From contig NIVC01000659.1 of the NCBI GenBank assembly GCA_002269645.1, positions 186,001 through 250,000 on the forward strand: a stretch of DNA of 64,000 bases. Reading direction: 5' to 3'. A program made the translations under genes and the position numbers. A model generated the notes under the pieces. That model was not told where the DNA came from. It saw nothing but the letters and a program-made list of their open reading frames with translations, and made no database searches. Positions 5,481-55,494 of this stretch are shown here, in pieces (the first letter of the stretch is position 1; every line of letters begins with the position of its first letter). Source of the stretch: Macrostomum lignano. Lineage: Eukaryota.

Positions 5481-5585
5481 CATCTGCTCAGCAACACCTC
5501 CGAGATGCTCAGTACCGCCTCACCATTCTCCTTTGCAGCTAATCGGTTTTCCGCAATTGTCGTCGTCAAGCCTCTAAAAATAGCA

Positions 5586-10008: not shown

Positions 10009-10297
10009 TCTAAAACGGATGTCACAAAGCTAATTTGCACAGCGCAGAATGGGGTTTTGCCATAGACAAATTTGTCGATAAAAACCCATCTACAGAGACA
10101 GGGAATTTGCTTGCTTGCCCGGTCTCGGTGAACACACTTGCTACATTTGAAATTCGGAAGGCTGTAGTCGGTGAAATATTGGGAATTTAGTGATACACAA
10201 CTGAAAACTTTCCAGTCTCGCTAATTGCAGGATTTTTTGTGTTAAGCGTCCGTCTGCTTGAGTTGTTCCTGTGTTTAGCCACGCAGATCAAAGCCAA

Positions 10298-28695: not shown

Positions 28696-29178
28696 AGTGC
28701 ACATACATGCGCAACCTTGGGAATCACCCGGCCGTTTCTATTGGCAACACACACATGTAAGTCGCCATACATGCGCAACAGTCGGCCGAGTCGGCCGATC
28801 CGGCCGACCGATTTGGCGGCCAACCAAGGAAGTCGCAAAAATGCCTACCCGAAAAAATAACAAAGTAGTAGTACTAAGTAGCTGACGAGGCATTTTGGCG
28901 TTATAAGACAGTCATAATTACTCCTGCCGTTTACCCAAAGTTGCGTTAATTTTGTTTTTGGTTTTTTTGCATGTAAATCGCATTTTTGGCCAAAAACTAT
29001 GTCGCATTTTTGTTAAAACTAAGTCGCATGGCCGACCGAATTTCGGAGGTTGCGCATGTATGTAAGTCGCTATTGGCTGAGAGCAGTCACGTGACCAATA
29101 TTCTGTCCAATAGCGACTTACATGTGTGTGTTGCCAGTAGAGGCGGCCGGGTGAATCCCTAGTTTGCGCCCAAGCATG
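28696..29178. mobile_element. Palindromic MITE of about 190 bp hosting the inner MITE, inserted in gag
   Basis: GGGAATCACCCGGCCG...CACACACATGTAAGTCGC mirrored at the right end; duplication CGTGCAC; another right-end copy at about 32694-32744. Confidence 0.75.
28766..29062. mobile_element. hAT-type MITE (297 bp), same family as 26041-26327
   Basis: TIR CATACATGCGCAAC; 8-bp TSD TAAGTCGC. Confidence 0.9.
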
Positions 29179-32100
29179 CGTGCACTTACTGTCGTCAGGG
29201 TCACTATTCCGATTTCTGCACGGTTGTTCCCACAGCAAAGGAGAGGATAGAGATTCTGAGAAAGGAGAGACGCTGCTTTTGCTGCCTACGACCGAACCAT
29301 CCTTCCAGTCAGTGTCGATCGAAGAGAGCTTGTCGCCATTGCGGTAAAATGCATCACCCAAGCGTCTGCCTGACTTCCCATCCTGGCGAAGCGCATCCTG
29401 CGATGACGAAAGTTGGAGCTGGGCACGTAGACCAGCAGAAAATAGTAACTCCACCGAACTGCAGTAGCACAACAGCCGTGACCATACCATGCGAGGACAA
29501 GACAATCTCTGAGAGTCAATCCCTTGTCGTGCACTCCAATCCTGCAGTGATCATGCCGACTGCTAAGTGTCTCATCATCAGTTCGGATGGCAAAACCGAA
29601 GTTCTGGTTCGTGCGCTCTTTGACACCGCCAGCAATAAAACTTATATCAGACAAGATTTAAGTCGGCAGCTGGACCTTGCAGTTGAGGCAACGGAAGTTT
29701 TGCGGGTCAACACATTTGGATCCAGCAGCACTGAATTCACATCAAGCATCGTCAGATTTAGCATTCGCAAAGCCAACTCTCTGGACGAAGATTATGTGAC
29801 TCTGAGAGGCTACACGACTCCTCGGATCTGCGAACCTCAGGCATCGGCGATGTGCGACGCTCATCCAGAACTCCAGCGTCTTCATCTGGCGAATCCATTT
29901 GACCCTCGCGATGCTAATGAGCCGATATCTATCTTGATTGGTGCCGATTGTTACTATGATTTGGTGGACGGCGACATCGTTAGAACAGTGAGCGGCAATG
30001 GTCCAGTCGCCGTTAAGAGCAAACTTGGCTATCTGGTCACCGGCAGATTAAGAATTGCTGACACACTTTGTGCTTCCTCGTCCGCATGCGCGATGCACTG
30101 TTCCGGAGAATCCCTAATGGATGGTATGCTGGCAGATTCCACAAGCAGTGAACTAGATCCGATGAGGGCGAAGCGGCCATTTCCTCCAAGTCTGGAATTT
30201 GAGCAAGGTAGATACTCCATCGGTCTGCCATTCAGGGATGGATGTCGAAAACTTCTGAGTGACAATTTTGGTCTCGCCTACCGACGGCTAAGGTCGACTG
30301 CGGAAAAGCTGCGTCAGACAGGAACAATCGACGAGTATGACAGGATCCTGCAGGAACAGCTGAACAGTGGCGTCATAGAACCTGTGCCATCTGACAGTGA
30401 TCCCGAATCAATCCAGCACTATCTGCCGCATTTGCCGATTGTCAAAGAGGACAGTTCGACGACGCGACTTCGTATCGTCTTTGATGCGAGCGCCAAGTCG
30501 GCAGCCGGCTGTTCGTTGAACGACGTATTGGAACAGGGTCCTTGCCGCTTGCCGTCTCTGTCACCGGAAGGTGGCTCACGGGGGAGTTGCAGCTACGTTG
30601 GTGCAGATTCGCGAGAAGTATTGGATGCTGAAGGCTCGGCAGAAAGTTAAATCTACTCTACGACGTTGCAACACCTGCATCCGGCTCCAGGGTTTGCCGT
30701 ACAAAGTTGGTCAGCAGTCGCAGTTACCCCTGTCAAGAATCGAATCGCTGAGAGCTTTCCAGCATGTTGGCCTGGACTACTGCGGTCCGCTTTTCTACCG
30801 CAGGGGGGAGGGAGATGGCCAACAAAAAGCCTACATCCTGCTCTTTGCCTGCATGGGCACCCGAGCGGTCCATCTTGAATGACCACAGATTTGACTACTC
30901 AATCTTTTCTGCAGAGTCTTCGTCGCTTCTGTGCTCGTCGCGGGATTCCGTCAATCATTTCGGACAACTTCAAGACTTTCCACGCAGCCGCGCGACTACT
31001 AGACGCCCACACGGCGCCCCTTCAGACCACACGAGTTCAAGAGTTTTTAGCCGCAAAAAAATCTGCTGGTCGTTTATCCCAGAAAAAGCACCATGGATGG
31101 GCGGATTCTACGAGCGATTGGTTGGTGTCGTGAAGTCAGCTTTGAAAAAGAACGTCTGCAAAGACTTTCTCACTCTGGACGAGTTAACAAACAGTTGTGT
31201 GCGAAGTGGAGGCAGTTGTGAATTCAAGACCACTCGGGTTCGTCTCGTCCGAAGCGCACGCGGAAGTGATCACGCCGAGTCATTTTCTTGTTCTGCATCG
31301 CCTGACAAAAGAACCAGAAGCGAATCCGAAAAGCCAAACAGTCCTGCCTCTTCCAGAGCGTCTGAGCAAAGTGCGGCGGATGCTGACCAAATTCTGGCAA
31401 GAATGGTTGAATGAGTACATCGTGGCTCTGCGCGAGCGTTCAGCAAGGAAGGAAGGACGAACTCTGGTCGCATAATCAAGGTCGGAGATGTCGTTTTGGT
31501 GATGGACGCCGGCATGCCGAGGCTGCAATGGAAGCTGGCGGTTGTGGAAGCGGTACATCATGGCCGTGATGGCGTTGCTAGGTCGTGCCTCCTGAGGTTA
31601 GCTAGTCCGCATCGTAGTCGCGCTGCTGTGCATTTTCGGCGGCCGGTGGCGTCGCTGGTTCCTCTGGAGGTCTAAGCCTGTCTCTCTTTTTTTGATCTTG
31701 TCTCGTGCTGTCTCGCCGTCGATCTCTCAGTCTATCTTTGTCTGCGTTTGCGTCGTCTAAATTCTGCGAGCTATCTGTAGCCACTGCGTGATTAGTTACT
31801 GATTCTGTTTCACTTGCATGATTTTTGCTGGCAATCAAATAATGCCTCTTGGTGTCGTAAGTACATACGTAAATTCGACGCACTTTTTTTAATCCGCAAT
31901 TGATCATAGTTTTGTTTGATTTTAATGTTCCAGTTTTTGATTGTCTTTGTGTCAAGGCACTTATTTCCAATATAAAATATTTTCTCGAAGTGCATTCGCT
32001 TATTTAGCTCGAAAATTTGTATTCGATAAAATAACTCGCATTCAATGTCTCGTCTTTATTTTCAGTGAAAGTTAGACTTTGCAGCCCTTTCCTTTTTAGC

Positions 32101-32940: not shown

Positions 32941-35900
32941 ATGTTAAGTCAACTTCGTCACAGTTGCTTCAAGTTCAAAGCAAGTTTTCAAGGTCTGACC
33001 CGACCACCCCTTCGCTGGGCACGCTCATCCTCATCAGCATTGCTGCAGCTTCCTGGCCATCAGGCGCCAAGTCTGCAGTTGCAGCGTCAGCTACACGATA
33101 AGCTGGTGCACAATCGGTCTCTTCGCTATCGTTTGGTGATATTTGACAAGGATGGCACCTTAGTGTGCTTTCACTCCATGTGGGCGCCTTGGGCTCGGGG
33201 CTTGGCAAATCGGCTGGTGAAGGCTAGCGGCCTTGATGTGGCTGCCAAGGTGGGTTTCTGGGTGAGGGTGAGGTAGAATGCCAGTTACAGGTGAGGTAGA
33301 ATGCCAGTTACAGGTGAGGGAGAGTGCCAGTTTCAGGTGAGGTAGAGTGCCAGTTGCAGGTGAGGGAGAGTGCCAGTTGCAGGTGAGGGAGAGTGCCAGT
33401 TACAGGTGAGGGAGAGTGCTAGTTACAAGTGAGGTAGAGTGCCAGTTATAGGTGAGGAGAGTGCCAGTTACAGGTGAGGTAGAGTGCTAGTTACAAGTGA
33501 GGTAGAGTGCCAGTTACAGGTGAGGGAGAGTGCCAGTTACAGGTGAGGGAGAGTGCCAGTTGCAGGTGAGGGAGAGTGCCAGTTGCAGGTGAGGTAGAGT
33601 GCCAGTTACAGGTGAGGGAGAGTGCCAGTTGCAGGTGAGGTAGAGTGCCAGTTACAGGTGAGGGAGAGTGCCAGTTGCAGGTGAGGGAGAGTGCCAGTTG
33701 CAGGTGAGGGAGAGTGCCAGTTACAGGTGAGGGAGAGTGCCAGTTGCAGGTGAGGGAGAGTGCCAGTTACAGGTGAGGGAGAGTGCCAGTTGCAGGTGAG
33801 GGAGAGTGCTAGTTGCAGGTGAGGGAGAGTGCCAGTTGCAGGTGAGGGAGAGTGCCAGTTGCAGGTGAGGGAGAGTGCCAGTTACAGGTGAGGGAGAGTG
33901 TCAGTTGCAGGTGAGGTAGAGTGCCAGTTGCAGGTGAGGTAGAGTGCCAGTTGCAGGTGAGGGAGAGTGCCAGTTGCAGGTGAGGGAGAGTGCCAGTTGC
34001 AGGTGAGGTAGAGTGCCAGTTGCAGGTACCGGACACCCAATTCCTCGCACTGATCCGGCAGGTTTACGGGATCCTGGGAGTCTGCGAGCAGACCCAGCGT
34101 GCGGGTCCGGGCCTGCTGGCCGAGGGCACCAAAGCCCAGATGCGGGTAGCACTGGCGCAGATGCTGGCTCACGAAGGCATGGACAAGGCCAAGGCCACCG
34201 CTATTGTTGAGGCCTGCGTGCCGGAGCCCGCTACGGATGCTGAGCACGTCAAGGAGCTGCACGATCTCAGCCAGCTGTTCGAGGTGCTGAGGCAGCACGG
34301 AGTGAAGATCGCCGTGTGCACCAGCGACCAGCGGGAGAGCACCATTGAGTCGCTTCGCCGGCTGGGGGTGAGGCGGCTGATGGGTGTCTCAGGATGGAGC
34401 GGGTGATGGTGTCTCAGGGTGGAGCGGGTGATGGTGTCTCAGGATGGGGCGGGTGATGGTGTCTCAGGATGGAGCGGGTGATGGTGTCTCAGGATGGGGC
34501 GGGTGATGGTGTCTCAGGGTAGGGCAGGTGATGGTGTCTCAGGGTAGGGCAGGTGATGGTGTCTCAGGGTAGGGCAGGTGATGGTGTCTCAGGGTAGGGC
34601 AGGTGATGGTGTCTCAGGGTGGGGCAGGTGATGGTGTCTCAGGGTAGGGCAGGTGATGGTGTCTCAGGGTGGGGCGGGTGATGGTCAGTGGTGTGATTCA
34701 GGCGCGAATTCGCGCCAGGCGCGAAAATGGCGCGAATGCGCGAATCCTGGGGGTCTGGCGCGAAATTTTGTGGAACCATGGGCGCGAAAATTGCATTCTT
34801 ATTTTCTGCTTTTTACGCTTATTCTCTTGTCAGACAGTATGAAATACAAGAATGTCATAGCTTAGGAGATTAATCTCGAGAATTTCGAGATTCGTGGAGA
34901 ATTTCGTGGTCGCAAAGAAGCAAAGTGACAATGAAGATGTGGCTGCTACGTCTGCAAGGGCGGCAGAGATCAGATGTGTGTGTTGTCAGGATTGCACTGA
35001 AGAATCGCAGCTTCGAGTCAGAAGAGGACCTTGCCGAGGATCTGATGGCCATTTGCCCAGATTCAAAGATTCCACCCAACATCGCCAACAAGAAGTTCAG
35101 GCGGGACACGGCTGGGACTTGAGAGACATGCTAATTGGTAGCCAGACGCATCCTCAAAAGTGTCATCAATTGACTTATTTGGCTGTCAGTAGAATATCAT
35201 TGGCATGGCGCGAAAATTTTCAGTCGGCGCGAAATTGGGCAAACTTTCCAATCACACCACTGGTGATGGTGTCTCAGGGTGGGGCGGGTGATCGTGTCTC
35301 AGGGTGGGGCGGGTGACTTAAAAATGTGGTCTCAGCCCGACTCAAACAGGAATCTCAGCATGACTCAAACAGATATTTCAGCATGACTCAATCAAGAACC
35401 TCAGCATGACTCAAACAGATATTTCAGCATGACTCAAACAGATATTTCAGCATGACTCAATCAAGAACCTCAGCATGACTCAAACAGATATTTCAGCATG
35501 ACTCAAACAGGAACCTCAGCGTGACTCAAACAGATATTTCAGCATGACTCAAACAGATATTTCAGCATGACTCAAACAGATATTTCAGCATGACTCAATC
35601 AAGAACCTCAGCATGACTCAAACAGATATTTCAGCATGACTCAATCAAGAACCTCAGCATGACTCAAACAGATATTTCAGCATGACTCAAACAGGAACCT
35701 CAGCGTGACTCAAACAGATATTTCAGCATGACTCAATCAAGAACCTCAGCATGACTCAAACAGATATTTCAGCATGACTCAAACAGGAATCTCAGCATGA
35801 CTCAAACAGATAGTTCAGCATGACTCAATCAAGAACCTCAGCATGACTCAAACAGATATTTCAGCATGACTCAATCAAGAACCTCAGCATGACTCAAACA

Positions 35901-38900
35901 GATATTTCAGCATGACTCAATCAAGAACCTCAGCATGACTCAAACAGATATTTCAGCATGACTCAAACAGATATTTCAGCATGACTCAATCAAGAACCTC
36001 AGCATGACTCAAACAGATATTTCAGCATGACTCAAACAGGAACCTCAGCGTGACTCAAACAGATATTTCAGCATGACTCAAACAGATATTTCAGCATGAC
36101 TCAAACAGATATTTCAGCATGACTCAATCAAGAACCTCAGCATGACTCAAACAGATATTTCAGCATGACTCAATCAAGAACCTCAGCATGACTCAAACAG
36201 ATATTTCAGCATGACTCAAACAGGAACCTCAGCGTGACTCAAACAGATATTTCAGCGTGACTCAAACAGGTGTCTCAGCATTACTCAAACATGTATCTCA
36301 GCATGACCCTGATGCGCCTCCTCCCAGGTGTCCCACCTAGTTGACAAAGTGGTGTGCGCAGACGATCCAACCAGCCTGCCGAAGCCGGACCCGCACAACG
36401 CCCTGATGATCTGTGACGCTTTGAGCGTGCATCCAAAGGACACCGTGATGGTCGGGGACACGGCCACCGACATGCAGTTCGCTAAGCAGGCTGGTCTCGG
36501 CCTGGGGGTCGGCGTTCTGAGCGGCATTGGGAGGTGCGTTTTGTTGAATTCGGTAGTCCGTAAATTGGTCAGATCAATTTATAAAATTATTGATTGAGTA
36601 GTTGAGTATTAGATCATAGGATTGTCATTTGATGGTTAAATTAATTGGTCAGATCAATTTTTTATTGGTCAAACCAGTTTGTAAATTCGTTTGATTGATT
36701 CGTAAATTGGTGAAATAATTTTAGAAGTATATAAGATAATTTTTTAAATTGGTCAGGTTAATTTGCTAATTTGTCAGAGTAATTAAAAATGGTCTAAACC
36801 AGGGGTCGGCAACCTTTTTCCACTTGAGGGCCAGATGAGGTTTTCAGTTCAAGACCACGGGCCACAGGTCGTCCCCCGATTACTTCGCCCCCCCCCCCTG
36901 GGTCTTTCTTTACCCTCCAAAATCTGCCCTCTGGGTCTTTACCTCCAAAATCTGCCCTCTGGGTCTTTACCTCCAAAATCTGCCCCATGGGTCCTTACCC
37001 TCCAGAATCCGCCCCATGGGTCTTTACCCTCCAGAATCCGCCCCGTCGGTCTTTACATTCCAGAATCCGCCCTCTGGGTCTTTACCCTCCAAAATCTGCC
37101 CCGCTGGGCCTTTACCCCCCCCCATACCATATTCGAAAGTTTGAACTGATGTGCTGTCTGTCTAGAGTTTGTAAACAGCCACTTACACGATCAGTTTGGG
37201 TCTCATTGTTAACTAATTTGTTATTAAAGTTGGCAATTGAGGAAAGAAATTTCCCATTATTAGTGCACAAAACTTTTGTAGGAGAAACAATGAAGTTACA
37301 ATAAAGGTGCGGGCCGGATTGTAATAATTAAGATTAAGGAAGTTCGCGGGCCGCATAGAAAGTCTTTGCGGGCCGGATCTGGCCCGCGGGCCGGAGGTTG
37401 CCGACCCCTAGTCTAAACAGTTCATAAGTTTGGTAGCGTAATTTGATAGCAACACATAAGTTGATCAAATAAATTTACAAATTGTTCAAATCAATGTGCT
37501 GGTTTTTTAAACCAATTTACAGATTAGTCAAGCCAATTTGCAGATTAGTCAAACCAATTTGCAGTTTAGTCAAACCAATTTGCAGATTAGTCAAACCAAT
37601 TTGCAGTTTATTCAAACCAATTTGCAGATTAGTCAAACCAATTTTTGCAGATTTGTCAATCCAATTTGCAGATTAGTCAATCCAATTTGCAGATTAGTCA
37701 ATCCAATTTGCAGATTAGTCAATCCAATTTGCAGATTAGTCAATCCAATTTGCAGATTAGTCAATCCAATTTGCAGATTAGTCAATCCAATTTGCAGATT
37801 AGTCAATCCAATTTGCAGATTAGTCAATCCAATTTGCAGATTAGTCAAACCAATTTGCAGATTAGTCAAACCAATTTGCAGATTAGTCAAACCAATTTGC
37901 AGATTAGTCAATCCAATTTGTAGATTAGTCAAACCAATTTGCAGTTTAGTCAAACCAATTTGCAGTTTATTCAAACCAATTTGCAGTTTATTCAAACCAA
38001 TTTGCAGTTTAGTCAAACCAATTTGCAGTTTATTCAAACCAATTTGCAGATTAGTCAAACCAATTTGCAGTTTATTCAAACCAATTTGCAGATTAGTCAA
38101 TCCAATTTTCAGATTGGTCAAATCGATTTGCACATTGTTTATAATAAATTTAAAATGAACTATTTATTTTCGCTCTGTATTCTAGGAAAGCCGACTTGGA
38201 AGCTGCAGGCGCCAGCACAGTAGTAAACACTGTGGGCGATGTGCTGCCAAATTTCTTCCCAGACCAGCCGATCAGCTTGACGGAGTCTGCGCGCCTCATC
38301 GCCGAGCGCGACTGGCGGCTGATCATCTGCGACAAGGACGGCAGTCTGGCCGACGTGCGCACCCGCTGGTCGGAATGGGCGCTGCGGGTTGGCAACCGCC
38401 TGGCCGAAGCTACCTCCGAATCGGTGGCCGAAAATTTCTACGATCTCATCGGATTCGACCCGGACACTGGCCGGATTCTGGGCGGTCCGTTGGCCGAGAG
38501 TCCGCTGTCCGATTTGCGCGATATGCTTGAGAGTCTGCTGCTGTTGAAGTGGCGGGTGGACGACAAGCAGCTGAGGGGAATTCTGGACCAGGTGAAATTC
38601 CATTGTCTACCTGGTTACCTTGAATTATAATGAGAAAGTCAATCATTTCTGCTCCATGGTAAAATTTGCGATTCTCTTCAGTCAAGTTCGGGATTTCCCT
38701 TAACCACTGTAATCTCGGATTTCTCTCACGTGAGTGCGGGATTCCCTTCGTTCCAATTGGGATTCCCCCCAATCCAACTCGGGATTCCCCTCCATCTGAT
38801 CGCGATTCCCCTCAATCCAACTCGGGATTCCCTTCATCCCAACTCGGGATTCCCTTCATTCCAACTCGGGATTCCCCTCAATCCAACTCGGGATTCCCCT

Positions 38901-41900
38901 CAATCCAACTCGGGATTCCCCTCAATCCAACTCGGGATTCCCTTCAACCCAACTCGGGATTCCCTTCAATCCAATTCGGTATCGGGATTCCCCTTCATCC
39001 GATGGCGATTCCCCTCAATCTAACTCAGGATTCCCTTCAATCCAACTCGGAATTCCCTCAATTCAACTCGGGATTCCCCTCAATCCAATCGGAAATTTCC
39101 CTTCAATATAACTCGGGATTTCCCGAAATCCAACTTAGGATTCCCTTCAATCCAACTCGAGATTCCCATCAATCTAACTTGGGATTTCCCGAAATCCAAC
39201 TCGGGATTTCCCTCAATCTAACTCAGCTGATTTTTCTCAATCCAACTCGGGATTCCCCTCAATCTAACTCAGCTGATTCCCCTCAATCCAACTCGGGATT
39301 CCCTTCCGTCCAACTCGTGATTCCCCAACTCAGGATTCCCCTCAATCAAGCTGGCTACTCCGCCCCCCTCTGCAACCAATCCAAGGTGTGGGACGACGGC
39401 AGCTCGGCCAGCAACCGCGCCGCCGACTCGCTGGCCGCCGATGGTATCCCGGAGGCTTTGGCCGACCTTCGCTCGCTCGGCTGCCGCGTCGCCGTGGTGA
39501 CGTCGGACTCCCGAGCCAGCCTGAACCAGTTCCTCACCGACTTCAGCCTGGCCAGCCTGGTGGATTACAGCCTGACCCCGGCCGAGCACCAGCCCTGGAG
39601 CGGCGCCTGCAAGTCACAGCCGCTGCTGGCCGCCTGTCGCCTCGCCGGCGTCTCCCCAGCCGACGCCGTCGTTGTTGGCGACACTCGCGCCGATTTGTCC
39701 GGCGGCCGGCGCGCCCGTCTCGGCGCCACCGTCGGCGTCCTGAGCGGCATGTCGGGACCGGAGGCGCTGATGCCGCACGCCGATTTGCTGGTGCCGAACC
39801 TGCCAGGCTTGACCGGCCTGCTCAAGCGGCGGCCTGCAGCTGAGCTCGGCCGGAGGTCCTACTCCACCTCCGCGGCGTCTGCCGAATACGATTACGTCAT
39901 CGTTGGGGCGGGCAGCGCCGGCTGCGTGTTGGCTAACCGATTGACCGAAGATTCCAATGTTCGCGTGCTGCTGGTGAGTAGCCTGTCTGGGTTATTGTTA
40001 GATCCTGGATGGGTTTGAACCTCAGCTGAACTTCAGGATCCTGAATGGGTTTGAACCTCAGCTGAACTTCAGGATCCTGAATGGGTTTGAACCTCAGCTG
40101 AACTTCAGGATCCTGGATGGGTTTGAACCTCAGCTGAACTTCAGAATCCTGGATGGGTTTAAACCTCAGCTGAACTTCAGAATCCTGGATGGGTTTGAAC
40201 CTCAGCTGAACTTCAGGATCCTGGATGGGTTTGAAACTCTGGTGAACTTCAGGATCCTGAATGAATTTGAGCTTCAGGTTTTAGGATTCTGAATGAGTTT
40301 GAGCTTCAGGTAGACTTCAGGATTCTGAATGGATTTGAGCTTTAGGTAAACTTCAGGATCCTGAATGAATTTGAGCTTCAGGTAAACTTCAGGATCCTGA
40401 ATGAATTTGAGCTTCAGGTAAACTTCAGAATCCTGAATGAATTTGAGCTTCAGATAAACTTCAGAATCCTGAATAAATTTGAGCTTCAGGTAAACTTCAG
40501 GATTCTGAATGAATTTGAGCTTCAGGTGAACTTCAGGATTCTGAATGAGTTTGAGCTTCAGGTGAACTTCAGGATCCTGATGAATTCGAGCTTCAGGTAA
40601 ACTTCAGAATCCTGATTGAGATTCAGCTTAATCTAAACTTCATGATTCTGAATGAGTTCGAGCTTGAGCTAAATTTTTGTATCTTTAATACCCAGAGTAA
40701 AAATGAATATTCTTCCAGATCGAAGCCGGCCCCACCGACCGTCGCAACCTGTTCATCCACATGCCCGCCGCTCTCATGTACAACCTGTGCCACGACAAGT
40801 ACAACTGGTACTATCACACTCTGCCGCAGAAGCACATGGACTCCAGGGTGATGTACTGGCCGAGAGGTCGCGTCCTTGGTGGCAGCAGTTCGCTAAACGC
40901 TATGGTTTACGTTCGGGGTCATGCATTTGACTATGACAGGTAAATATAGGGGCAATTCATGTGTCTCACTCCTGGTATAATTTTTAACGCTCTTGCGATA
41001 TCGAGAGCTGATTCAGAATATCCCATTTATCAATTATGAATCTTGTGTATATATGAGGTGGGTTGCGCGGGACTGTAGAGACAAGACGTCACGAGTCTGG
41101 GATGCACGGGTCATAAGCTTTCTGTTAAGGGTCATAGGCTGTATCAGGGGGTCCGTTATGAAGGGGTCATATGCCTTTTGTTAAGGGGTCATAAGCATTT
41201 TGTTAAGGGGTCATAGGCCTTTTTCAGGGTCATAGACCTTGTTTTAAGGGGTCATAGGCCCGGAAGCACAAGTCATAAGCCCTGTACCAAGAGATCATGG
41301 GCCTCGGAGCAAGGGGTCATAATCTTCGTGTCAAGAAGTCAATCTTTGTGTCAAGGAGTCTTAATCTTCGTGTCAAGAAGTCAATCTTTGTGTCAAGGAG
41401 TCTTAATCTTCGTGTCAAGGAGTCAATCTTGGTGTCAAGGGGTCATAGCCTGGTGTTAAGGGGTCATAGCCTGGTGTCAAGGGGTCATAGCCTGGTGTTA
41501 AGGGGTCATAGCCTGGTGTCAAGGGGTCATAGCCTGGTGTTAAGGGGTCATAGCCTGGTGTCAAGGGGTCATAGCCTGGTGTTAAGGGGTCATAGCCTGG
41601 TGTTAAGGGGTCATAGCCTGGTGTCAAGGGGTCATAGCCTGGTGTTAAGGGGTCATAGCCTGGTGTTAAGGGGTCATAGCCTGGTGTTAAGGGGTCATGT
41701 TTGTAGCAGAGGGGTCACAGAGTCAGCAATCTCGGCAGCTGATTGTCACCCCTCGGCCACCCCCAGGTGGGCCAAAGAAGGCGCCGCAGGCTGGTCCTAC
41801 GCGGACTGTCTGCCCTACTTTCGCAAAGGTCAGCATCACGACGACCTGCCGGCTGACGATTACGTCGGCGGCGACGGGCCGCTGCACGTGTCGCGAGGTC

Positions 41901-44900
41901 GCACGGCGCATCCGCTGCACAGCGCCTGGCTGGCAGCCGGTCAGGAGGCCGGATATCCGCTTAGCGACAACTTGTACGGCTATCAGCAGGAGGGAGTTGG
42001 CTGGCTAGACATGACCGTGCACAATGGCAGGCGGTGGTCAACCGCTACAGCTTATCTTTGGCCGGCTGCCAAGAGGCCAAACTTGACTGTGGTTACCGAC
42101 AAGCTGGTGACGAGGTAAATTGTTGGATGAGTTGACTGCAAAAGTTTTGTTTGTTTGGGGTTGTTTTTGGGATGACTGCTCAAGTTGGAGATGTTTTTGG
42201 GATGACTGCTCAAGTTGGAGATGTTTTTGGGATGACTGCTCAAGTTGGAGATGTTTTTGGGATGACTCTCAAGTTTGAGATGTTTTTGGGATGACTGCTC
42301 AAGTTTGAGATGTTTTTGGGATGACTGCTCAAGTTTGAGATGTTTTTGGGATTACTGCTCAAGTTTGAGATGTTTTTGGGATGACTGCTCAAGTTGGGTA
42401 TGTTTTTGGGATGACTGCTCAAGTTTGAGATGTTTTTGGGATGACTGCTCAAGTTTAGGATGTTTTTGGGATGACTTCTCAAGTTGGGGATGTTTTCGGG
42501 ATGACTGCTCAAGTTGGGGATGTTTTTGGGATGGCTGCTCTAGTTTGGGATGACTGCTCAAGTTGGGGATGTTTTTGGGATGGCTGCTCTAGTTTGGGAT
42601 GACTGCTCAAGTTGGGGATGTTTTTGGGATGACTTCTCAAGTTGGGGATGTTTTCGGGATGACTGCTCAAGTTAAGGATGTTTTTGGATGACTGCTCAAG
42701 TTGGGGATGTTTTTGGGATAACTGCTCAAGTTTGGGATGTTTTTGGGATGACTGCTCAAGTTGGGGGTGTTTTTGGGATGACTGCTCAAGTTGGGGATTT
42801 TTTGGGATGACTGCTCAAGTTGGGGATATTTTTGGGATAACTGCTCAAGTTGGGGATGTTTTTGGGATGACTGCTCAGGATAACTGCTTGAAGTTCAAGG
42901 ATCAGAGTGATTTAAATCCTTGCTTGTGCTTGGGATTAGAGTGGTTGGGATTCAGATCACTGGCAGCCTGAGCAGTGCAAGCCCCACCCTCTCCCCTCCC
43001 CAGCCTGGTGTTCGACGGTCTCCGTGCTACCGGCCTGCAGATGCAGGGCAGGCGTGGCGGCGGCGGCGACAGCCAGACGGTCCGCGCCAATCGCGAGGTC
43101 ATTCTCAGCGGCGGCGCCATCAACTCGCCCCAGCTGCTCATGCTGTCCGGCATTGGGGACGCTGACCAGCTGCGCAATCTGGGCATCCCGCTGGTGCACC
43201 ACCTGCCCGGAGTTGGTGCCAACCTCCAGGTGAGAGCCCATAGCACACACTACCCCCGTAGCACCCACCACCCCATAGCACCCACCACCCCATAGCACCC
43301 AGCACCCAATAGCACCCAACACCCCACAGCACCCACCAACCCGTACCACCCACCATCCCACAGCACCCACCACCCCACAGCACCTACCACCCCACAGCAC
43401 CCACCACCCCACAGCACCTAACACCCCACAGCACCCACCACCCCACAGCACCCAGCACCCCATAGCACCCAGCACTCCACAGAACCTACCACCCCACAGC
43501 ACCCACCACCCCACAGCACCCACCACCCCATAGCACCCACCACCCAATAGCACCTACCACCCCACAGCACCTACCACCCCACAGCACCCACCACCCCACA
43601 GCACCCACCACCCCACAGAACCTACCACCCCACAGAACCTACCACCCCACAGCACCCACCACCCCACAGCACCTACCACCCCATAGCACCCACCATCCTA
43701 CAGCACCCAACACCCCACAGCACCCACCAAACCCGTACCACCCACCACCCCACAGCACCCACCAACCCGTACTACCCACCACCCTATAGCACCCACCACC
43801 CCATAGCACCCACCACCCCACAGCACCCACCAACCCGTACCACCCACCACCCTATAGCACCCACCACCCCATTGCACCCACCACCCCACAGCACCCACCA
43901 CCACAAACGTATCTCACTGTCTACCTCACCGCTCCCACCGCCGTCAGGACCACCTGGAGCTCTACGTGCAGCAGCGGTGTACTCAGCCAATCACACTGTA
44001 CAGCGCCCAGTGGAAATTCCCCTGGAACATGGTGGGCATCGGACTGCGCTGGCTGACCACCCAGACAGGCTGGGGCGCCACGTCTCACCTAGAGACTGGC
44101 GGCTTCATCCGCACGGAGGCTGGCGTGCCTCATCCGGACGTGCAGTTTCACTTCCTGCCGTCTGTGGTCACGGATCACGGTCGAAAGTCGGGCAATTGTC
44201 ACGCGTTTCAGGTAGGCATTGTTCATTAGGTGCTGGAATTATTGATTTTTTCTAATATTTCGCATTGTTTTTCACTCCACTTAATCCGCTTCACAAATAT
44301 TATAATCCTACAATCTCCCAATGATCCAGTCCTAATCCGCTTCCCAATGATCTTCCCATAATTTACTTTTAATAATCCACTGACGATGATCCACCTCCGA
44401 TAATCTACTCAATTATTACTTCTGATGATCTACTTCCAACAATCTACTTCCGATAATAAATTTCTGATAATCCGCCTCCGATAATCCACTTTCCACAACT
44501 CACCTCCGATAATCCACTTCCCATAACCGAGCTCTGATAATCCACTTCCAACAACCCACCTCTGATAATCCACTTCCCACAACCCACCTCTGATAATCCA
44601 CTTCCGATAGTCTACCTCCGGTAATCCATTTTCAAGAAATATTTCATCTTCGATAATTCATCTCTAATAATATCCTCCCGATAATCTACTCCCGATGATC
44701 CAATTCCAAAAATCTACTTTCGATAATCCATTACAGATAATACACTTCTACATTCCACTTCCGATAATTCATCTCTGATATTCTGATAATCTATTTCAAC
44801 TGGATAAATCATTTCGACAATTAAATTCCGATAATCCACTCCCTATTATTAACCTCCAATTAATATTACTAGATGAAACTATAGTCAGAGTTTATCCCAG

Positions 44901-45989
44901 ACCGTTTATAATCATATCCAAACGAATCCCCCAGGTGCACGTGGGCCCCATGCGGCCGGAGAGCCGCGGCACGCTTCGGCTTGCCTCGGCGGACCCGCGC
45001 CAGGTGCCCCTGCTGGATCCAAACTACATGGCCACCGAGCGGGACAGGTGGGAAATGCGGCAGTGCATCCGGCTGGCTAGGGAGATTTTCGCCCAGCCCG
45101 CGTTCGACCAGTACAGAGGTGAGATAATAGTAGATCCCCATAGCAACTGTCATTCCTATACTAACCGCATCTATTGCCAAATAAAAAACCATTACAATAG
45201 CAACGATTTGGCTCCATAGCAGCGGTTAGGCCCCCCATAGCAACGGTTAGGCTCCCTCCATAGCAACGATTTGCCTCCCCATAGCAACAATTCGCCCCCA
45301 TAGCAACGATTTGCCCCCATAGCAACGATTAGCCTCCATAGCAGCGATTAGCCCTCATAGCAACGGTTAGGCCCCCATAGCAACGGTTAGGCCCCCATAG
45401 CAATGGTTAGGCCCCCATAGCAACGGTTAGGCCCCATAGCAACAATTTGCCCCCATATCAACGGTTAATATGGCCCCCATATCAAGGGGGCCTAATAGCA
45501 ACGTTTAGTCCGCCATAGCAAGGGTTAGAACTAATAGCAATCATTAGCCCTCTTAGCAACGATTAGCCTCCCTAGCAACGATTGATCCCCATGGTAACAA
45601 CCATTCGATCTCCAGGCTCCGAGCTGCAGCCGGGCTCCGAGGCCCGCACCGACGCCCAGCTGGACGCATTCGTCCGGGCCGCCTCCGACTCGGCCTACCA
45701 CCCGTCCTGCACCTGCCGCATGGGCCCGGCCGCCGACCCCACGTCCGTGCTGGACGAGAACCTCCGGGTTCGTGGACTCGACGGCTTGCGCGTCGTCGAC
45801 GCCTCGGCGATGCCCTCGATTGTGTCCGGCAATTTGAACGGGCCAACCATCATGCTGGCCGAGAAGGCCGCCGACATCATCAGGGGCCGCCAGCCGCTGC
45901 CACCAGCCACCGAGGTCCCCGTGTGGCAGCCGGCCCGGCCGGAAAGGCAGCGAGACGGGGAGCCGGTCAGGCGATTGGAGCAGGTTTAA
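32941..45989 (+). CDS. CHDH: Mitochondrial fusion protein: presequence, two HAD-like phosphatase domains and choline dehydrogenase (GMC oxidoreductase); exons 32941-33249, 34062-34367, 36328-36533, 38186-38591, 39386-39973, 40719-40939, 41767-42114, 43004-43229, 43948-44211, 44935-45118, 45616-45989 (1143 aa)
   Basis: HAD1 FDKDGTL/CTS/PKP/GDTATD; HAD2 CDKDGSL/VTS/CKS/GDTRAD; [71 protein letters not shown]; the HAD2 end and CHDH start lie in one exon (39386-39973); all phases consistent. Confidence 0.92.
33265..34027. repeat. 23-bp minisatellite (GTGCCAGTTGCAGGTGAGGGAGA)n in intron 1
   Basis: About 33 units, each containing CAG|GTGAG. Confidence 0.94.
34380..35315. repeat. 25-bp G-rich minisatellite (GTGATGGTGTCTCAGGGTAGGGCAG)n split by a MITE
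   Basis: Units resume after the insertion at 35263. Confidence 0.88.
34686..35262. mobile_element. hAT-type MITE (577 bp), TIR CAGTGGTGTGATT, subterminal GGCGCGAAA repeats
   Basis: 13-bp perfect TIR; 8-bp TSD GTGATGGT. Confidence 0.88.
35335..36305. repeat. 23-bp minisatellite (TCAGCATGACTCAAACAGATATT / TCAGCATGACTCAATCAAGAACC)n containing TGACTCA
   Basis: About 40 units, two interspersed variants. Confidence 0.95.
36800..37410. mobile_element. hAT (Charlie-like) MITE (611 bp) containing an internal minisatellite of about 28 bp
   Basis: TIR CAGGGGTCGGCAACCT / AGGTTGCCGACCCCTA; 8-bp TSD GTCTAAAC. Confidence 0.9.
37510..38110. repeat. 21-bp minisatellite (CAATTTGCAGATTAGTCAAAC)n
   Basis: Tandem units in intron 3. 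Confidence 0.94.
38735..39345. repeat. 22-bp minisatellite (CCCCTCAATCCAACTCGGGATT)n
   Basis: Tandem units in intron 4. Confidence 0.9.
39995..40660. repeat. 36-bp minisatellite with two variant blocks (GGATCCTGAATGGGTTTGAACCTCAGCTGAACTTCA to GGATCCTGAATGAATTTGAGCTTCAGGTAAACTTCA)
   Basis: Tandem units in intron 5. Confidence 0.92.
41110..41700. repeat. 21-bp minisatellite (GGGGTCATAGCCTGGTGTCAA)n with degenerate 5' part
   Basis: Tandem units in intron 6. Confidence 0.9.
42155..42880. repeat. 30-bp minisatellite (TGTTTTTGGGATGACTGCTCAAGTTGGAGA)n
   Basis: Tandem units in intron 7. Confidence 0.93.
43240..43900. repeat. About 17-bp C-rich minisatellite (CACCCACCACCCCACAG)n
   Basis: Tandem units in intron 8. 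Confidence 0.92.
44330..44850. repeat. Degenerate CCGATAATCCACTT repeat in intron 9
   Basis: Eroded tandem units. Confidence 0.7.
45215..45575. repeat. About 20-bp minisatellite (CCCCCATAGCAACGGTTAGG)n in intron 10
   Basis: Tandem units. Confidence 0.88.
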
Positions 45990-47389: not shown

Positions 47390-48633
47390 AATGTAGGTGA
47401 GCAGACAGACGGACGGACAGACAGACACACAGACAGACAGACACACACACAGACAGACAGACAGACACACAGACAGACAAATAGACAGACAGACAGACAG
47501 CCAGGCAGGCAGGCAGCCAACGTACTGTCGGTCAATTGTCTGACCAAGTATTGCACTGAAAGCGAATTATTGCTGAGCGTAAGCATTATGGCCACAATCC
47601 GCTACTCGCGAGTAGGCACATGCAGATGCAGCTACCAGTACAATAAGAAGCGCACCCGTGCAAATGTACGGGTTTGCATAAACAGTGCTATAGTTGATTA
47701 AAGAGGGTAAAAGAAAAGCACCTGAACAACTGGGTGAATCCGGTGGCTGTGTACACTGGCAACGGGTGAACAGCTGTTTGGCCGAATAGCAGCTCATTTT
47801 TCGTCTCTTATATCAACCCCGTTAGCTAGCTGAAAGCCAACTACCTGCTAGTTTTATCTGTCTATCGTGACAGCGAGTGGCCCAAAGAGAATGAGCGAGA
47901 GTGCCTGCTCGCATTTCATTATGTTAGGAGACTTGAAGGAAAAAAACTGCTGTGTTGAATTTAGTCTCAAGAACGTACGGGTAAGGCTGGAGAGATGAAG
48001 ACAAACAAGAGACGGTGGCCTCACAAAGGCGATGCTGGGAGAGAGGGAGAGGCTGGAGAAGCGAGGAGGTGGCTGCGGACAGACCTGGAGAACTCAAAGG
48101 AACCGAATTTGGATTGGCAGCTTTTTACTGTAACGCTCGTTTGCAGACACAAGATTTATTGTACAATATAGTACGAGAATAATATCACAATCTGGTAAAT
48201 TACATGTCAGAGAACATCCGCGAGGTTTAATTTAAGCTAGTTATATTTTCATAGTTGTGTCATATTGACGAATCCGGTTGAAAAAATAATGCATATAACA
48301 GAGACAGAATTAGCAGGTGAAATTTTGCTGGAACTTTTCTCGCTTGCTTATTATGGTGTCCGGTAGGATTTCATAAGTAAATTAACTTGATAAATCTGCT
48401 ACTCATATGACCTTGTAGCGTCCGTAGAGGGAGGGGTGAGCGTTAGCGCTCCAGATTCTTGTCTTTAGGTCTCCTGGGGTGCAGAAATCTAATCGAAAAC
48501 ACACGCCGCCCCACCTCCACCTGCACTGGTCTGGGTTAAGCGCTGGTTTCTAAACCATTATAGGCACAGGTTAGTCCGATAAACACGAGAGTGGAATTCT
48601 CGCCTCTTTCATTATCTACTTGCCCAACTTCTG

Positions 48634-51501
48634 ATGAGCATGAGACCGCCGAAGCCGCAGGGTCCGCTGCAGGTGGACAAGGCTACTCACCACTCGCTGG
48701 AGCTGAACTGGGAGGCGCAGCTGCAGCAGGCGGCCGCAGAGCAGAGCGGCGAGGACGGCCGACTTCGAGTAGAGGTCCAGTGGTGCCGATTTGAGAACAC
48801 CTGGGAGGTGGCCTACAAAGGATTCGATGTGCGCTGCGTCTGCGCAGGCCTGGAGCCCAACCAGGAGTACCAGGTGGGCAGTTGAGCTTTGCGAAATTCG
48901 AAATCTTGATGGCTGTTTAATTTAACTCTGAGGGACATTGCTAATACAGCTGACGCCAATTCCGTTAGAAACGAATTACCGTGACAAGAATTGCTATAGA
49001 GAGTCATTGCAAACAACTCACTCTAGCGACTATGGGGCGACTCTTGTGACTTTTTAGCGACTGGTGCGATGGAGAAGCGGTTTTTGAGTCTGGAGCGCAT
49101 CACGTGAGCTGCAGAATCGTAAAAGAGTCGTGAAAAGATCGTCCAAGAGTCGTTGTGTTAGCGCTTTACTTTCTACTGACTCAAGTAGTCTAAACAGAGT
49201 TGTTATAAATGCGAAATGCGATTCTGATTCGTTAAGTAAGTGACGCAAATGCGCTTTAGACGCAAGTCGGTGATTCTGCAGCGACTCGAGCTGCCTCAGA
49301 TCCGACTTTACGGCCCCAGAGTCATTTCAGAGTCGAAGCCTACATGTAGGTACCGTTTTCAGCGGAATAGTACGATACATTCTTGCAGAAGCCTTGAAAA
49401 TCGTGTCTCGTTACGTCTAAACTCAATGTGAGCGATGGTTTTCTAGCGAGGAGGAACACTGATACGTACACAGGCATGGCACAGGCTCACAGGATGTCCC
49501 TTCCCTCAAATGAATGAATTGAACCAAGGGTCGTGTCGTGCGACTACGTGATTACAGTTGAGCTACTCCAGCCCGACAGCAAGAATTCGTTTGTTTTGTA
49601 TATTTGTGGATTGAGTGCCCGCAGCCCCTGGATGTAAGAGCAACTGCAGCACCCCCCCCTCGTCAAAACCCAGGTGCGAATCCGGTTCGGCAACGGGCAC
49701 GGCTGGGGCGACTTCAGCGAGCCGGTGACATCGAAGACCGCCGCCAAGCCGTTCAGCGGCGAGGATCTGCACCGGTATATTCGTCGACGAAATTTGGACG
49801 CTCTGGTGAATGTGCTGGAGACCGGGGAGGCCAACCCCAATGCGCCGGATGACAAAGGTTTTACGCCTCTGGCTGAAGCGGCTCTGGAAGGCTTGCTGGA
49901 CTATTGTCAGGCGCTGCTGGACCATCGGGCTGATGTCAACTGGTCTGGAGACAATGGTGCGTCGAAGGGTTGAAGCTGGATTAGTTTACATATTACCGTT
50001 GTGGTGTACATGCTGAATGAATTTTACTTCCTGATAGAGTGTACCCTCAGGGAGAAATAATTATTTTTTCATCACAAAGACAATGATTGCATTTGATCTG
50101 TGGTAGTAAAGATTACCATTATTGTACAATAATTTAGCATGCACAGCACGTTACTCTGTTGATTTTATGTAGTTCTGTAGTAAAATGATTTTTTCTTATC
50201 AGAATTCTCATCTTAAATTGGCCTCCAAAAATTACACAATGTTTGAGTTTTTTTGTCGTGTTTTTCGACAGTACAGTGGTGATTTTTTTAAATTAATGTG
50301 TTAGTACATGGATTCTAGAGTGTGTGGCAGAAGGAGGACTTAAGTGGGACGGGAAACCTCGTTTCCTAGAAAATTTTTGAAGGCGGCTTTTCCCGAAAAA
50401 ATACACTACGGAGATAGGAAGTTTTCATTTTTTCAGCAAAAAATTGCTATTGCTTTTGATAGGAGGCAGATCCAGTGTTCATCTTTTGATATGTTGTGCC
50501 TTTTTTATTGCTCTATCGATATTTATAAAGCTTTTCGTTCAGAAAATTAGGATTCTATGTTAATTTTTTTTCTACGTACATTTCCTTTACCTAAACAATA
50601 ATAAAAATGCATGGCACAGCTTCAATCTTTGGTTTTATGAATCTATCTTATCATCTCTGTTACAAATATTTGTTACTCAGTCAGCTAAGGATGATAAAAT
50701 AGACTCATAAAACCAAAGAGCCGAGCCGTGCCATTTTAATGGTTTTTAGGCACAAGACAAGTGCAAATGTACGTAGAATAAAAATAACGTATTTTTAAAG
50801 TGATAAAGTATTTTTCGGAAAAGCCGGCCCTCAAAACTTTTCCAGGAAACGAGGTTTCCCGTCCTTCTACTTAAGTCGTCCTTGGTGTTGCATTGCTGAC
50901 AAAATAAACATTGCTGATCAAAGTCGTTTGTCCAATGTTTAATTTTCAAAGAACTTCCCGATCCTGCACCGCCGCAGGCAAGACCTGCCTGATGCTGGTG
51001 GCCTACAAAGGCAAGCCGGAGGTGCTTCAATGGCTGCTGGAGTCGGCCAACGCCAGTTTGCATCCGCGCGATCGCAACGGGCTCAGCGCGCTGCACTACG
51101 CGGTGGACGGCGAACAGCTGGACAATGTCCGACTCCTGCTGGACGCCGGAGCCGACCTGCACGCCAAGGACAACGCCGGCTGCACGCCGCTGCTCCGCTG
51201 CGCCCAGCACCGCAATAACGGCAACGCAGCATTGGCAGTCGAGCTGCTCAACCGTGGAGCGCTAGTCGACGAGACCGACTCCAGCGGGCAGACGGCGCTG
51301 TTTTACTGCGTGATGAACCGGCACGAGAAGCTGGCCGCTGTGCTGCTGCATCACGGAGCCGACATCCGGGCCACCAACAGCCGCGGCCTGTCCGTGCTGA
51401 AGGCCACAGACGGCCAGCAACCGGACCGCAAAGCGATGCGGGCGCTGCTGCTTGAGCACGAGGAGAAACGCCGGTCGGAGCAGCAGCAGAAATCCGCTTA
51501 A
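48634..51501 (+). CDS. FANK1: Fibronectin type III and ankyrin repeat domains protein 1; exons 48634-48873, 49674-49956, 50978-51501 (348 aa)
   Basis: FN3 (HHSLELNW...GLEPNQEYQVRIRFGN) followed by ankyrin repeats (GFTPL, GKTCLM, GLSALH, GCTPL, GQTAL); phases consistent. Confidence 0.9.
50330..50884. mobile_element. hAT-type MITE in FANK1 intron 2
   Basis: TIRs ...ACTTAAGT...GACGGGAAACCTCGTTTCC; TSD GTGTGGCA/GTGTTGCA (7 of 8 match); same family as 57090-57799. Confidence 0.85.
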
Positions 51502-54204: not shown

Positions 54205-55494
54205 ATGAGCCCTACTCATCTCTTTGGATCGTCAAGAAAACTACGGATGAGATTCTAGCGAACTTAAGGCTCTTCGTGGCTCCAACCGCATCTGCGGTGA
54301 GCATAGTGGGCCTTCTTCTATCCGTATGGGCGTTCGCTAGAACCTGGCGCGTCCTCAAAGGCAAGGACCTGCTGCTGTGCGCCAATATCGCGGCCGACTT
54401 CGTCACCGTTGTCACCACGTAATTTTCAATCGTTTGATTATCAAATGGCCAAGCCGCACACGTTACCAGGCACAAAAATAATTTGGCAAGTTAGCAAAAA
54501 GTGAAGTATAAGAGATAGTCTACTATGAGTAGTAATAGCAGGAGGGCTGCGGGCACCCTTCGGCGACATCGTCCTAGAAGCAGCGCCGAAGTAATTCTGC
54601 TCATTACGCTGCTCGGCACGCACTCATACACACGCTCACACAGGGTCGTCAGTCATGTACACTCTCACCTAGCAGTCCTTGCCAATGTCCCTTCCTGGTG
54701 TCCGCAGGCTGACTGCCCGCGAGTTTCTCAACGGCGGCCTCGGTAGTCGAATGTCGCTAGCGCTGCCCCACCTGGCTCTGAACTGGGCCTGCAAGCTGTG
54801 GGCCTTCTTCTGGGTGCTCAGCAATAGCCTGTCGTCCAATTTGATTTGTCTGATGGCCGCGGACCAGATCTACGCCCTGTGCTGGCCGCTGCGCCACCGA
54901 ACTCGCATGACAAAGCGGAAATACTGCCTGACGCTCTTCTTGTTCGTCTTTCTCTTTGCCTGCGCAGCAGCTCAGGGCGTCCTGTACGAGACTTACGACT
55001 ACTATGGGCAGAGGTACTGCTACCTGCCACTCATGCTGATCAAAGTCGTCTCCGAGCTCACCCAGGCCTACGCCTCGCTGCTACTTAACGGCGTTGTTAG
55101 CAGCATAGCTCTGGCCGTTAGCAACGTCTTCATCTGCGCCAAGATCTTGTCGATTCGAGCAGCCAGTGCGAAGCTGCAGCAGCAGGCGGACCAGCAGGCG
55201 GTGGACCTGCGCGGCGCCAGAAGCCTGCTGGTCACTGCCGCCGTCTACCTACTGGTCTCGCTGCCCCGAGTGGCGACGTACTTTTTAGCCTATCTCAACA
55301 TCCGCTACAACATGTGGGATAACGGGGACATCATGAACCCACTGCTGCTGGCGCTGGCTAACGTTTTCAACTACCTGTTCTACGTGTACTGCTCGGTTAA
55401 CTGGCTGCTCTGCGGTCTGCGAATTCGGCTGTTTCGCCACCAGTTCAACCAGCTCCTGGGCCGCCTCAGGCAGCGCGCCACTGGGCCTGCGTAG
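54205..55494 (+). CDS. Orphan rhodopsin-like (class A) 7TM GPCR; exons 54205-54418, 54708-55494; N-terminal exon not located
   Basis: Seven hydrophobic segments; TM3 end LMAADQIYALCWPLRHR; TM6 VYLLVSLP; TM7 followed by FRHQF helix 8; phase-2 intron consistent. Confidence 0.8.

Follow-up and report, generated by a model that had tools for sequence, protein, structure and literature searches.

Precursors that carry two proteins and are cut internally by MPP (mitochondrial processing peptidase) have been established in a few proteins from fungi and in one from rice (PMC8734313). The only internal MPP site of a two-enzyme precursor to have been dissected experimentally is that of Arg5,6, a tandem precursor of yeast and other fungi, in which the site RSY lies in a presequence-like segment and trimming by Icp55 is predicted by MitoFates (PMC8734313, Friedl et al. 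2020). Internal cleavage of Arg5,6 requires a strong N-terminal presequence (PMC8734313). The same authors credited animals only "potentially" with such processing and, among fusions of the type, considered Arg5,6 alone to be widely conserved (PMC8734313). In human TOP3A, MPP cuts internally at R-x|F, in the C-terminal part of the protein (PMC12585908). Here, we describe a gene of the flatworm Macrostomum lignano in which two HAD domains are fused through a short linker to choline dehydrogenase (CHDH), and in which the linker contains a candidate internal site for MPP. The gene lies in a window of 64,000 nucleotides (NCBI GenBank assembly GCA_002269645.1, contig NIVC01000659.1, positions 186,001 to 250,000 of the forward strand), and all coordinates below are those of the window.

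We consider it probable, judging from the sequence, that after import the HAD-CHDH precursor is split by MPP and Icp55 into a di-HAD protein and CHDH. For import, cleavage, and the identity of the proteases, we infer the following steps. The N-terminal presequence would drive import through TOM/TIM23 and would be removed by MPP in the matrix. MPP would also cut within the linker, two residues after R566, at S567|Y568, and Icp55 (XPNPEP3) would then remove the destabilizing Y568, leaving S569-T570-S571 as the new N-terminus. The expected products are a di-HAD protein whose mass, with its presequence still counted, does not exceed 61.0 kDa, and a CHDH of 575 amino acids and 63.5 kDa, with a mature N-terminus of the same kind as that of unfused CHDHs. 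The features on which this prediction turns are the following.

32941 to 33090, forward strand: N-terminal mitochondrial presequence-like region, amino acids 1-50, with no acidic residue before D53.
39386 to 39973, forward strand: exon 5, 588 nt, one open frame that runs from the C-terminal half of HAD2 through the linker into the beginning of CHDH.
39749 to 39772, forward strand: in-frame internal Met codons M531 (39749-39751) and M538 (39770-39772), a possible CHDH-only start.
39824 to 39880, forward strand: linker, K556-S574, basic, unstructured, and presequence-like.
39851 to 39868, forward strand: core motif, R565-R566-S567-Y568-S569-T570, the predicted MPP/Icp55 site.
Between 39859 and 39860, forward strand: predicted MPP cut, S567|Y568, with R566 at -2.
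Between 39862 and 39863, forward strand: predicted Icp55 cut, Y568|S569, placed by the consensus match.
39863 to 45986, forward strand: predicted mature CHDH, S569-V1143, spliced, with the GMC_oxred_N/C domains.
39887 to 39925, forward strand: start of the Rossmann fold of CHDH, from the sequence.

An earlier note, made from the sequence alone, had placed a cleavage motif at 39830-39890 and had given the full-length protein a mass of about 125 kDa. The position was right within a few bases, the peptide being encoded in frame in exon 5 by the linker coordinates given above, and translation of the 11-exon gene model yielded a product of 1143 amino acids and 124.6 kDa. The note had also called R-x-Y/F|S an MPP/Icp55 signature. 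The residues do match the consensus, but the bar, drawn as RRSY|STS, marks the Icp55 step, and MPP should cut at RRS|YSTS. Its premise that there are tandem mitochondrial polyproteins cut internally by MPP is borne out by the proven RSY site of Arg5,6 (PMC8734313).

The fusion is encoded continuously. In M. lignano, the HAD-CHDH junction lies in one exon and one open frame, and the interval 39818-39913 of the forward strand, inside exon 5, is open in frame and free of stop codons, splice sites, and introns. In a mollusc-like genomic contig (L003; ENA ctg32100, 5212-12406, GC content of 38%), HAD2, the linker, and the whole of CHDH are found in a single 2.4-kb exon, which is spliced to an upstream HAD1 exon, as opposed to the six introns that interrupt the CHDH part in M. 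lignano. A 4.6-kb Logan contig (L001) has the appearance of a cDNA, with 5' and 3' untranslated regions around an uninterrupted di-HAD-CHDH open reading frame (ORF) of 3,546 nt. The Mlig_3_7 annotation of M. lignano is a genome-guided transcriptome sequencing (RNA-seq) assembly with gene boundaries cut at mapped trans-splice and poly(A) sites (PMC5730564). The BOX15 gene models, judging by their locus tags, derive from this annotation, and one ORF of 1145 amino acids spans the whole fusion in both copies of the gene.

Since the junctions are single-exon and in one frame, L001 is cDNA-like, and the annotation is based on RNA-seq, neither a merged gene prediction nor an operon-type split can be the main explanation. 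A merged prediction was ruled out by the single-exon junctions of M. lignano and L003, and a split by operon or trans-splicing by the absence of a stop codon or an intron between the two parts. The HAD and CHDH modules do occur separately in other lineages, as unfused CHDH and as stand-alone HAD proteins in nematodes. Many of the "proteins" of about 800 amino acids found in ENA and Logan correspond to the last exon of the L003 type, called as a prokaryote-style ORF.

To describe the linker across species, we defined it as the segment from the end of the last HAD domain to the start of the Rossmann fold. Removal of near-duplicates left 58 linkers of 19 to 116 amino acids from hosts in eight phyla, namely, flatworm, nemertean, annelid, molluscs, amphioxus, hemichordates, copepods, and an acoel. 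Full-length di-HAD-CHDH orthologs of 1,160 to 1,235 amino acids were found in the nemertean, the annelid, and many molluscs. Proteins with a single HAD domain, 880 to 1,013 amino acids long, were found in amphioxus, two hemichordates, a copepod together with copepod-like metatranscriptome sequences, and two acoels.

The motif R.[FY]S[TS] occurs once in the M. lignano protein, at residue 566, at the junction; chance alone would give 0.033 matches per protein and 0.001 in the junction. It was present in 51 of the 58 non-redundant linkers, and a looser form was present in 54. The 3,400 linker residues contained 69 matches, as opposed to none in the remaining 41,948 residues of the same proteins. 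When the linkers were shuffled with their composition preserved, a mean of 0.85 linkers had a match, and not one of 3,000 shuffles reached 51. Of the 67 [FY]S[TS] sites in the linkers, 54 had an arginine at -2. Seventeen linkers carried two or three copies of the motif, 7 to 29 amino acids apart, and the last motif in the fusions was most often located 16 residues from the Rossmann landmark. No cleavage motif was found between HAD1 and HAD2 in any ortholog, all matches being confined to the linkers. Thus, the two HAD domains should stay together.

In a MAFFT alignment of 21 sequences, the motif columns were conserved at 76 to 100% (R566 in 16 of 21, F/Y568 in 20 of 20, S569 in 19 of 20, and T570 in 18 of 20), whereas no residue exceeded 5 of 21 (24%) in any flanking linker column. 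Across the eight phyla, linker length and the surrounding residues have diverged past alignment. Because five residues were kept while everything around them, including the length of the linker, diverged, the pattern carries the signature of purifying selection on a five-residue motif. The earlier note had made its proposal depend on some conservation of the motif in orthologs, and such conservation is what we found.

A motif of this kind might be kept for a reason other than proteolysis. It could belong to an internal targeting-like element that assists Tom70/TOM with a long precursor, or it could be a hinge site for a basophilic kinase (R-x-x-S). The linkers do have a presequence-like composition, and an arginine at -3 from serine fits minimal basophilic kinase motifs. 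However, internal targeting-like elements are compositional and need no exact R-x-[FY]-S-T, and a kinase motif leaves unexplained the invariant aromatic residue at -1 and the threonine at +1, both of which are consensus positions for MPP/Icp55. Because of the pattern of conserved positions, a kinase or 14-3-3 site was rejected, and we regard another function of the motif as a whole as very improbable.

The fit to the proteases is close. In plants, yeast, and mammals, the consensus for MPP followed by Icp55 is RX(F/Y/I/L)|(S/A)(S/T), where MPP cuts two residues after the arginine and Icp55 then removes the destabilizing aromatic residue (PMC8847149). The linker consensus, R-x-[FY]-S-T-[ST], agrees with it position by position, and the M. 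lignano site reads RRSY, compared with RSY at the internal MPP site of yeast Arg5,6.

In vertebrates, echinoderms, an ascidian, and the brachiopod Lingula, CHDH is as a rule unfused, and many of these presequences end in a motif of the same kind (R/K-x-[FYL]-[SAC]-x), mostly 6 to 21 residues before the Rossmann fold. Examples are RCFSA and RCFST in teleosts, RLLSV, RPFSV, and RPFCV in sea urchins, and RHLSV in Lingula; a brittle-star CHDH has RFYST 35 residues before the fold. Given that unfused CHDHs end their presequences with a motif of the same kind about as far from the Rossmann fold, we take the linker to be the retained end of the CHDH presequence. This agrees with the earlier note, one of whose suggestions was that the ancestral targeting peptide of CHDH had been retained at fusion. 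Its other suggestion, a polyprotein split after import into a di-HAD phosphatase and mature CHDH, is likewise supported to the extent that the sequence can tell. In this scenario, a HAD gene would have fused upstream of CHDH, the end of the CHDH presequence would have been kept as the linker, and selection would have maintained it since at least the bilaterian ancestor, a date that rests on sparse taxon sampling. The broadest form of the proposal is that HAD-CHDH is an animal-wide mitochondrial two-enzyme polyprotein that goes back to about the bilaterian ancestor, is split by MPP and Icp55 at a retained presequence, and represents the first metazoan precursor of the Arg5,6 type; we would put its chances at about even.

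A search of representative sequences, in which nearly all of the fusions were collapsed into a few representatives, returned mostly bacterial BetA but also a eukaryotic fusion, P0241. In P0241 and in P0392, both from Logan/ENA, the Rossmann fold follows the HAD domain with almost nothing in between (APSLGSVYIAPDTNALHTDVLVVGGGSAGC), and there is neither a presequence-like linker nor R-x-F-S-T. These two proteins may represent an independent or an older fusion.

The linkers resemble presequences beyond the motif itself. The 25 amino acids upstream of the motif in the 51 motif-bearing linkers contained 3.8% D+E, 16% K+R, and 24% S+T, compared to 11%, 10.5%, and 10.6%, respectively, in the CHDH domain. 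We scored presequence character with a composition classifier trained on N-terminal extensions versus mature-domain windows (cross-validated area under the curve of 0.93). In 14 of 22 orthologs, the best-scoring internal window for presequence character fell in the linker. In M. lignano, the linker has a net charge of +4 in 14 residues and is one of two places in the protein with at least +4 per 14 amino acids. For the M. lignano linker alone, the classifier and the hydrophobic moment are suggestive, not decisive. An AF2 model based on the 21-sequence alignment predicted both HAD domains with confidence, and the second ended in a helix at residues 550-557 of P0001. The predicted local distance difference test score (pLDDT) fell below 50 at residues 559-575, a stretch that coincides exactly with the linker and separates the last helix of HAD2 from the first strand of the Rossmann fold.

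Amino acids 1-50 of the M. lignano protein comprised the top presequence-like windows of the whole protein; the hydrophobic moment peaked at amino acids 17-34 (z = 2.9), and AF2 placed a helix at residues 2-22 with a pLDDT below 50. It is therefore plausible that this region acts as a strong presequence, as Arg5,6 requires for internal cleavage in vivo. Of 32 N-terminal cleavage regions in these fusion proteins, no more than 3 contained the strict motif. Thus, the internal motif conforms better to the consensus than its N-terminal counterparts do, which fits a site that has to be recognized without a free N-terminus.

Several points weigh against internal cleavage, which is itself a prediction. 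The strict motif was absent from 7 of the 58 linkers, four of which lacked the loose form as well, and the orthologs are related, so that the number of sequences cannot be read as a number of independent events. Presequence scores come only from our home-made composition classifier, a rough substitute for MitoFates or TargetP. With 19 amino acids, one of them a glutamate, the linker of M. lignano is the shortest of all 58; its score (z = 2.5) was second to that of a window inside HAD2, and its amphipathicity, measured as hydrophobic moment, was moderate. Finally, M531 and M538 have in-frame codons, located 37 and 30 residues, respectively, upstream of the predicted MPP cut, and an older CHDH-only UniRef model of 613 amino acids begins at M531.

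The last two points would suit a CHDH-only product made from an internal transcription start, a trans-splice site, or an internal AUG (M531 or M538). The linker would then be an ordinary N-terminal presequence, and the fusion would not need to be cut. Many M. lignano mRNAs are trans-spliced (PMC5730564), and some Met is found 12 to 70 amino acids upstream in 31 of the 51 motif-bearing linkers. The Met is not conserved, however; from the HAD2 core to the Rossmann fold, no Met is present in Tubulanus or Owenia. The N-terminus that such a start would create is acidic and rich in proline, and its presequence score in the composition classifier was about zero (z). Neither M. lignano nor L003 has an intron immediately before the linker, so an alternative first exon would have nowhere to splice in, and the evidence-based annotation has the single 1145-amino-acid ORF in both gene copies. 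We therefore consider an internal start unlikely as the source of CHDH, although its product could coexist with internal cleavage. The UniRef entry in question, A0A1I8FV72, is named "choline dehydrogenase," lacks both HAD domains, and conflicts with the RNA-seq-based models of the same locus.

The protein might also remain a single uncut bifunctional enzyme of 120 kDa, the motif being a relic of the CHDH presequence that has no proteolytic role or is too poorly placed to be cut. The origin of the linker as such a relic is well supported, and in vivo an internal site may be buried or passed over by MPP (PMC8734313). The M. lignano linker is minimal, and P0241, with its direct junction, implies that an uncut fusion is viable. 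A neutral relic should decay, though, and only R-x-[FY]-S-T-[ST] was kept in the linkers. Moreover, the N-terminal cleavage regions are less canonical than the internal motif, and the additional copies of this motif in 17 linkers are not easily accounted for unless it has a function. An uncut enzyme thus seems to us unlikely, and cleavage by MPP and Icp55 is the explanation that we favor.

The remaining features of the gene are the following.

32941 to 45989, forward strand: presequence-HAD-HAD-linker-CHDH gene, whole coding region, in 11 exons with all introns GT-AG.
32941 to 33249, 34062 to 34367, 36328 to 36533, and 38186 to 38591, forward strand: exons 1-4 of the spliced gene model.
40719 to 40939, 41767 to 42114, 43004 to 43229, 43948 to 44211, 44935 to 45118, and 45616 to 45989, forward strand: exons 6-11 of the spliced gene model.
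33130 to 38228, forward strand: HAD domain 1, about amino acids 64-288, spliced, matching Pfam Hydrolase/HAD_2/Hydrolase_like and carrying four HAD motifs.
33142 to 33159, forward strand: HAD1 motif I, FDKDGT, read in the sequence.
36454 to 36471, forward strand: HAD1 motif IV, GDTATD, read in the sequence.
38304 to 39823, forward strand: HAD domain 2, about amino acids 314-555, spliced, from the second Pfam HAD stretch, the motifs, and AF2.
38328 to 38345, forward strand: HAD2 motif I, CDKDGS, read in the sequence.
39677 to 39694, forward strand: HAD2 motif IV, GDTRAD, read in the sequence.

The product of this model is identical to GenBank PAA78948.1 (BOX15_Mlig009934g2, Macrostomum lignano, 1145 amino acids) minus two leading residues. 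A second M. lignano gene copy, PAA93511.1, has an identical linker. An alternative acceptor for exon 2 at 34026, which would add 12 residues, was rejected; the acceptor at 34062 is backed by orthologs and by the GenBank protein. Motifs II and III read CTSD and KPDP in HAD1 and VTSD and CKSQP in HAD2, where motifs II to IV are encoded in exon 5. The motifs of HAD subfamily IA, I (DxDG[TS]), II (S/T), III (K), and IV (GDxxxD), are thus complete in both copies. The CHDH part matched Pfam GMC_oxred_N (PF00732; 2e-55) and GMC_oxred_C (PF05199; 2e-40). Its closest solved structure was 9lq0, an oxygen-dependent choline dehydrogenase, over the full length (E value of 1.5e-171). It was 61 to 67% identical to animal CHDHs, and GAGSAGC, the GxGxxG of the FAD fold, was invariant in the 21-sequence alignment.

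The HAD domains provide few clues to a substrate. Their PDB matches were generic HAD phosphatases of the HAD-IA type. No NCBIfam family reached its cutoff for these domains; the best score, 71.7 bits where 218.9 are required, was that of TIGR03351, a PhnX-like phosphonatase-like hydrolase. The gene neighbors of two bacterial HAD homologs disagree, with phosphoglucose isomerase beside one and the end of an ABC importer operon at the other. The latter homolog, which is 39% identical (L006, 1982-6735), ends an operon with a binding protein of the SBP_bac_6 type. The PhnX-like match and the ABC importer neighborhood are a weak hint of a phosphonate or a small phospho-amine as the substrate, and a phosphocholine phosphatase that feeds CHDH is pure speculation.

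HAD architecture also varies among animals. Both HAD copies of Macrostomum, Tubulanus, and Owenia have DKDG[ST], whereas motif I of HAD2 in the mollusc orthologs P0005-P0018 is FDL[HN]GT. The second catalytic aspartate is lost there, so mollusc HAD2, as judged from this motif, is probably inactive or repurposed. In nematodes (P0303 from Parascaris and P0306 from Anisakis), only a stand-alone HAD ortholog of about 300 amino acids was seen, with a presequence-like N-terminus and an end right after the HAD fold. Trematodes (P0300 and P0304) have at least a di-HAD protein; the Paragonimus contig (L002) is full of N gaps.

Within 33250-45615, nearly every intron of the M. lignano gene is filled almost end to end by its own tandem repeat, with periods of 14 to 46 nt. 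Examples are located at 33267-34027 (23 nt, 33 copies), 35330-36307 (46 nt, 21 copies), 37509-38136 (21 nt, 30 copies), 38737-39326 (22 nt, 26 copies), 40001-40665 (36 nt, 19 copies), 42155-42877 (30 nt, 24 copies), and 43237-43902 (17 nt, 39 copies). Several of these striking arrays abut splice sites. Simple and tandem repeats make up 15% of the M. lignano genome (PMC5730564). Directly upstream of the gene, at 27404-31500 on the forward strand, are retrotransposon-like ORFs, one of which encodes a gag-like DUF1759 protein (PF03564; 2e-32); the pol-like ORFs that follow it had no Pfam match at 1e-3. Downstream, on the same strand, are an ankyrin-repeat protein at 48583-51498 (Ank families, about 1e-23) and an ORF for a rhodopsin-family seven-transmembrane receptor at 54673-55491 (PF00001; 5e-12).

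Should the internal presequence function as proposed, lineages that lose the HAD part, such as vertebrates, tunicates, echinoderms, and the brachiopod, would at once be left with a correctly targeted CHDH, which would explain why the gene has come apart repeatedly. The locus would then show in a concrete case how fusion and fission of genes become reversible when a targeting peptide is retained. A mitochondrial HAD phosphatase or phosphonatase-like enzyme would work with choline oxidation in marine invertebrates, and this enzyme would be genetically tied to the synthesis of glycine betaine, an osmolyte pathway important in these animals. M. lignano, in which transgenesis is available, would offer an animal model substrate for internal MPP cleavage, and the 58 or more divergent linkers would form a natural experiment on the minimal needs of an internal MPP site. 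For annotation, "choline dehydrogenase" models of about 1,150 to 1,200 amino acids (di-HAD) or 880 to 1,010 amino acids (single HAD) in invertebrate genomes are real fusions and do not result from merging during gene prediction.

A literature search found no paper on a HAD-CHDH fusion or on an animal tandem precursor of such a type, which is not proof of novelty. Wherever it was compared at the sequence level, HAD-CHDH appeared to share the properties of the Arg5,6/Atp25 class. The mechanism proposed here is already known in principle. Like Arg5,6, it would place two enzymes in one mitochondrial precursor with an N-terminal presequence and a presequence-like segment at the junction. Both have an arginine at -2, an aromatic residue at +1, and predicted trimming by Icp55, and in both this organization was kept over very long evolutionary distances. 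The two systems also differ. Cleavage of Arg5,6 has been proven experimentally, whereas that of HAD-CHDH is predicted from the sequence. Arg5 and Arg6 catalyze successive reactions and form a complex, whereas for the HAD part of HAD-CHDH there is only a weak hint of a substrate. Arg5,6 goes back to a bacterial operon, in contrast to HAD-CHDH, where the internal signal would be the retained presequence of the downstream partner, and the hosts are fungi in one case and animals in the other.

Atp25, Etp1, Rsm22-Cox11, and rice RPS14 are likewise composite precursors with MPP motifs at the junction (PMC5063612; PMC8734313). Atp25 is cut three times by MPP (PMC5063612; PMC8734313), which parallels the 17 HAD-CHDH linkers with two or three copies of the motif. 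The partners in these precursors are unrelated, however, and the precursors are not conserved over a kingdom-wide range, and none is from an animal. Human TOP3A resembles HAD-CHDH as an animal MPP substrate that is cut far from its N-terminus, but there about 90 residues are trimmed to modulate one enzyme, as opposed to the separation of two enzymes predicted here. Finally, the unfused CHDHs of vertebrates, echinoderms, and Lingula share the same kind of motif and an equivalent predicted mature N-terminus with the fusion. The motif is found at the N-terminus of the precursor in these proteins, whereas in M. lignano it lies 556 residues in, behind two folded domains.

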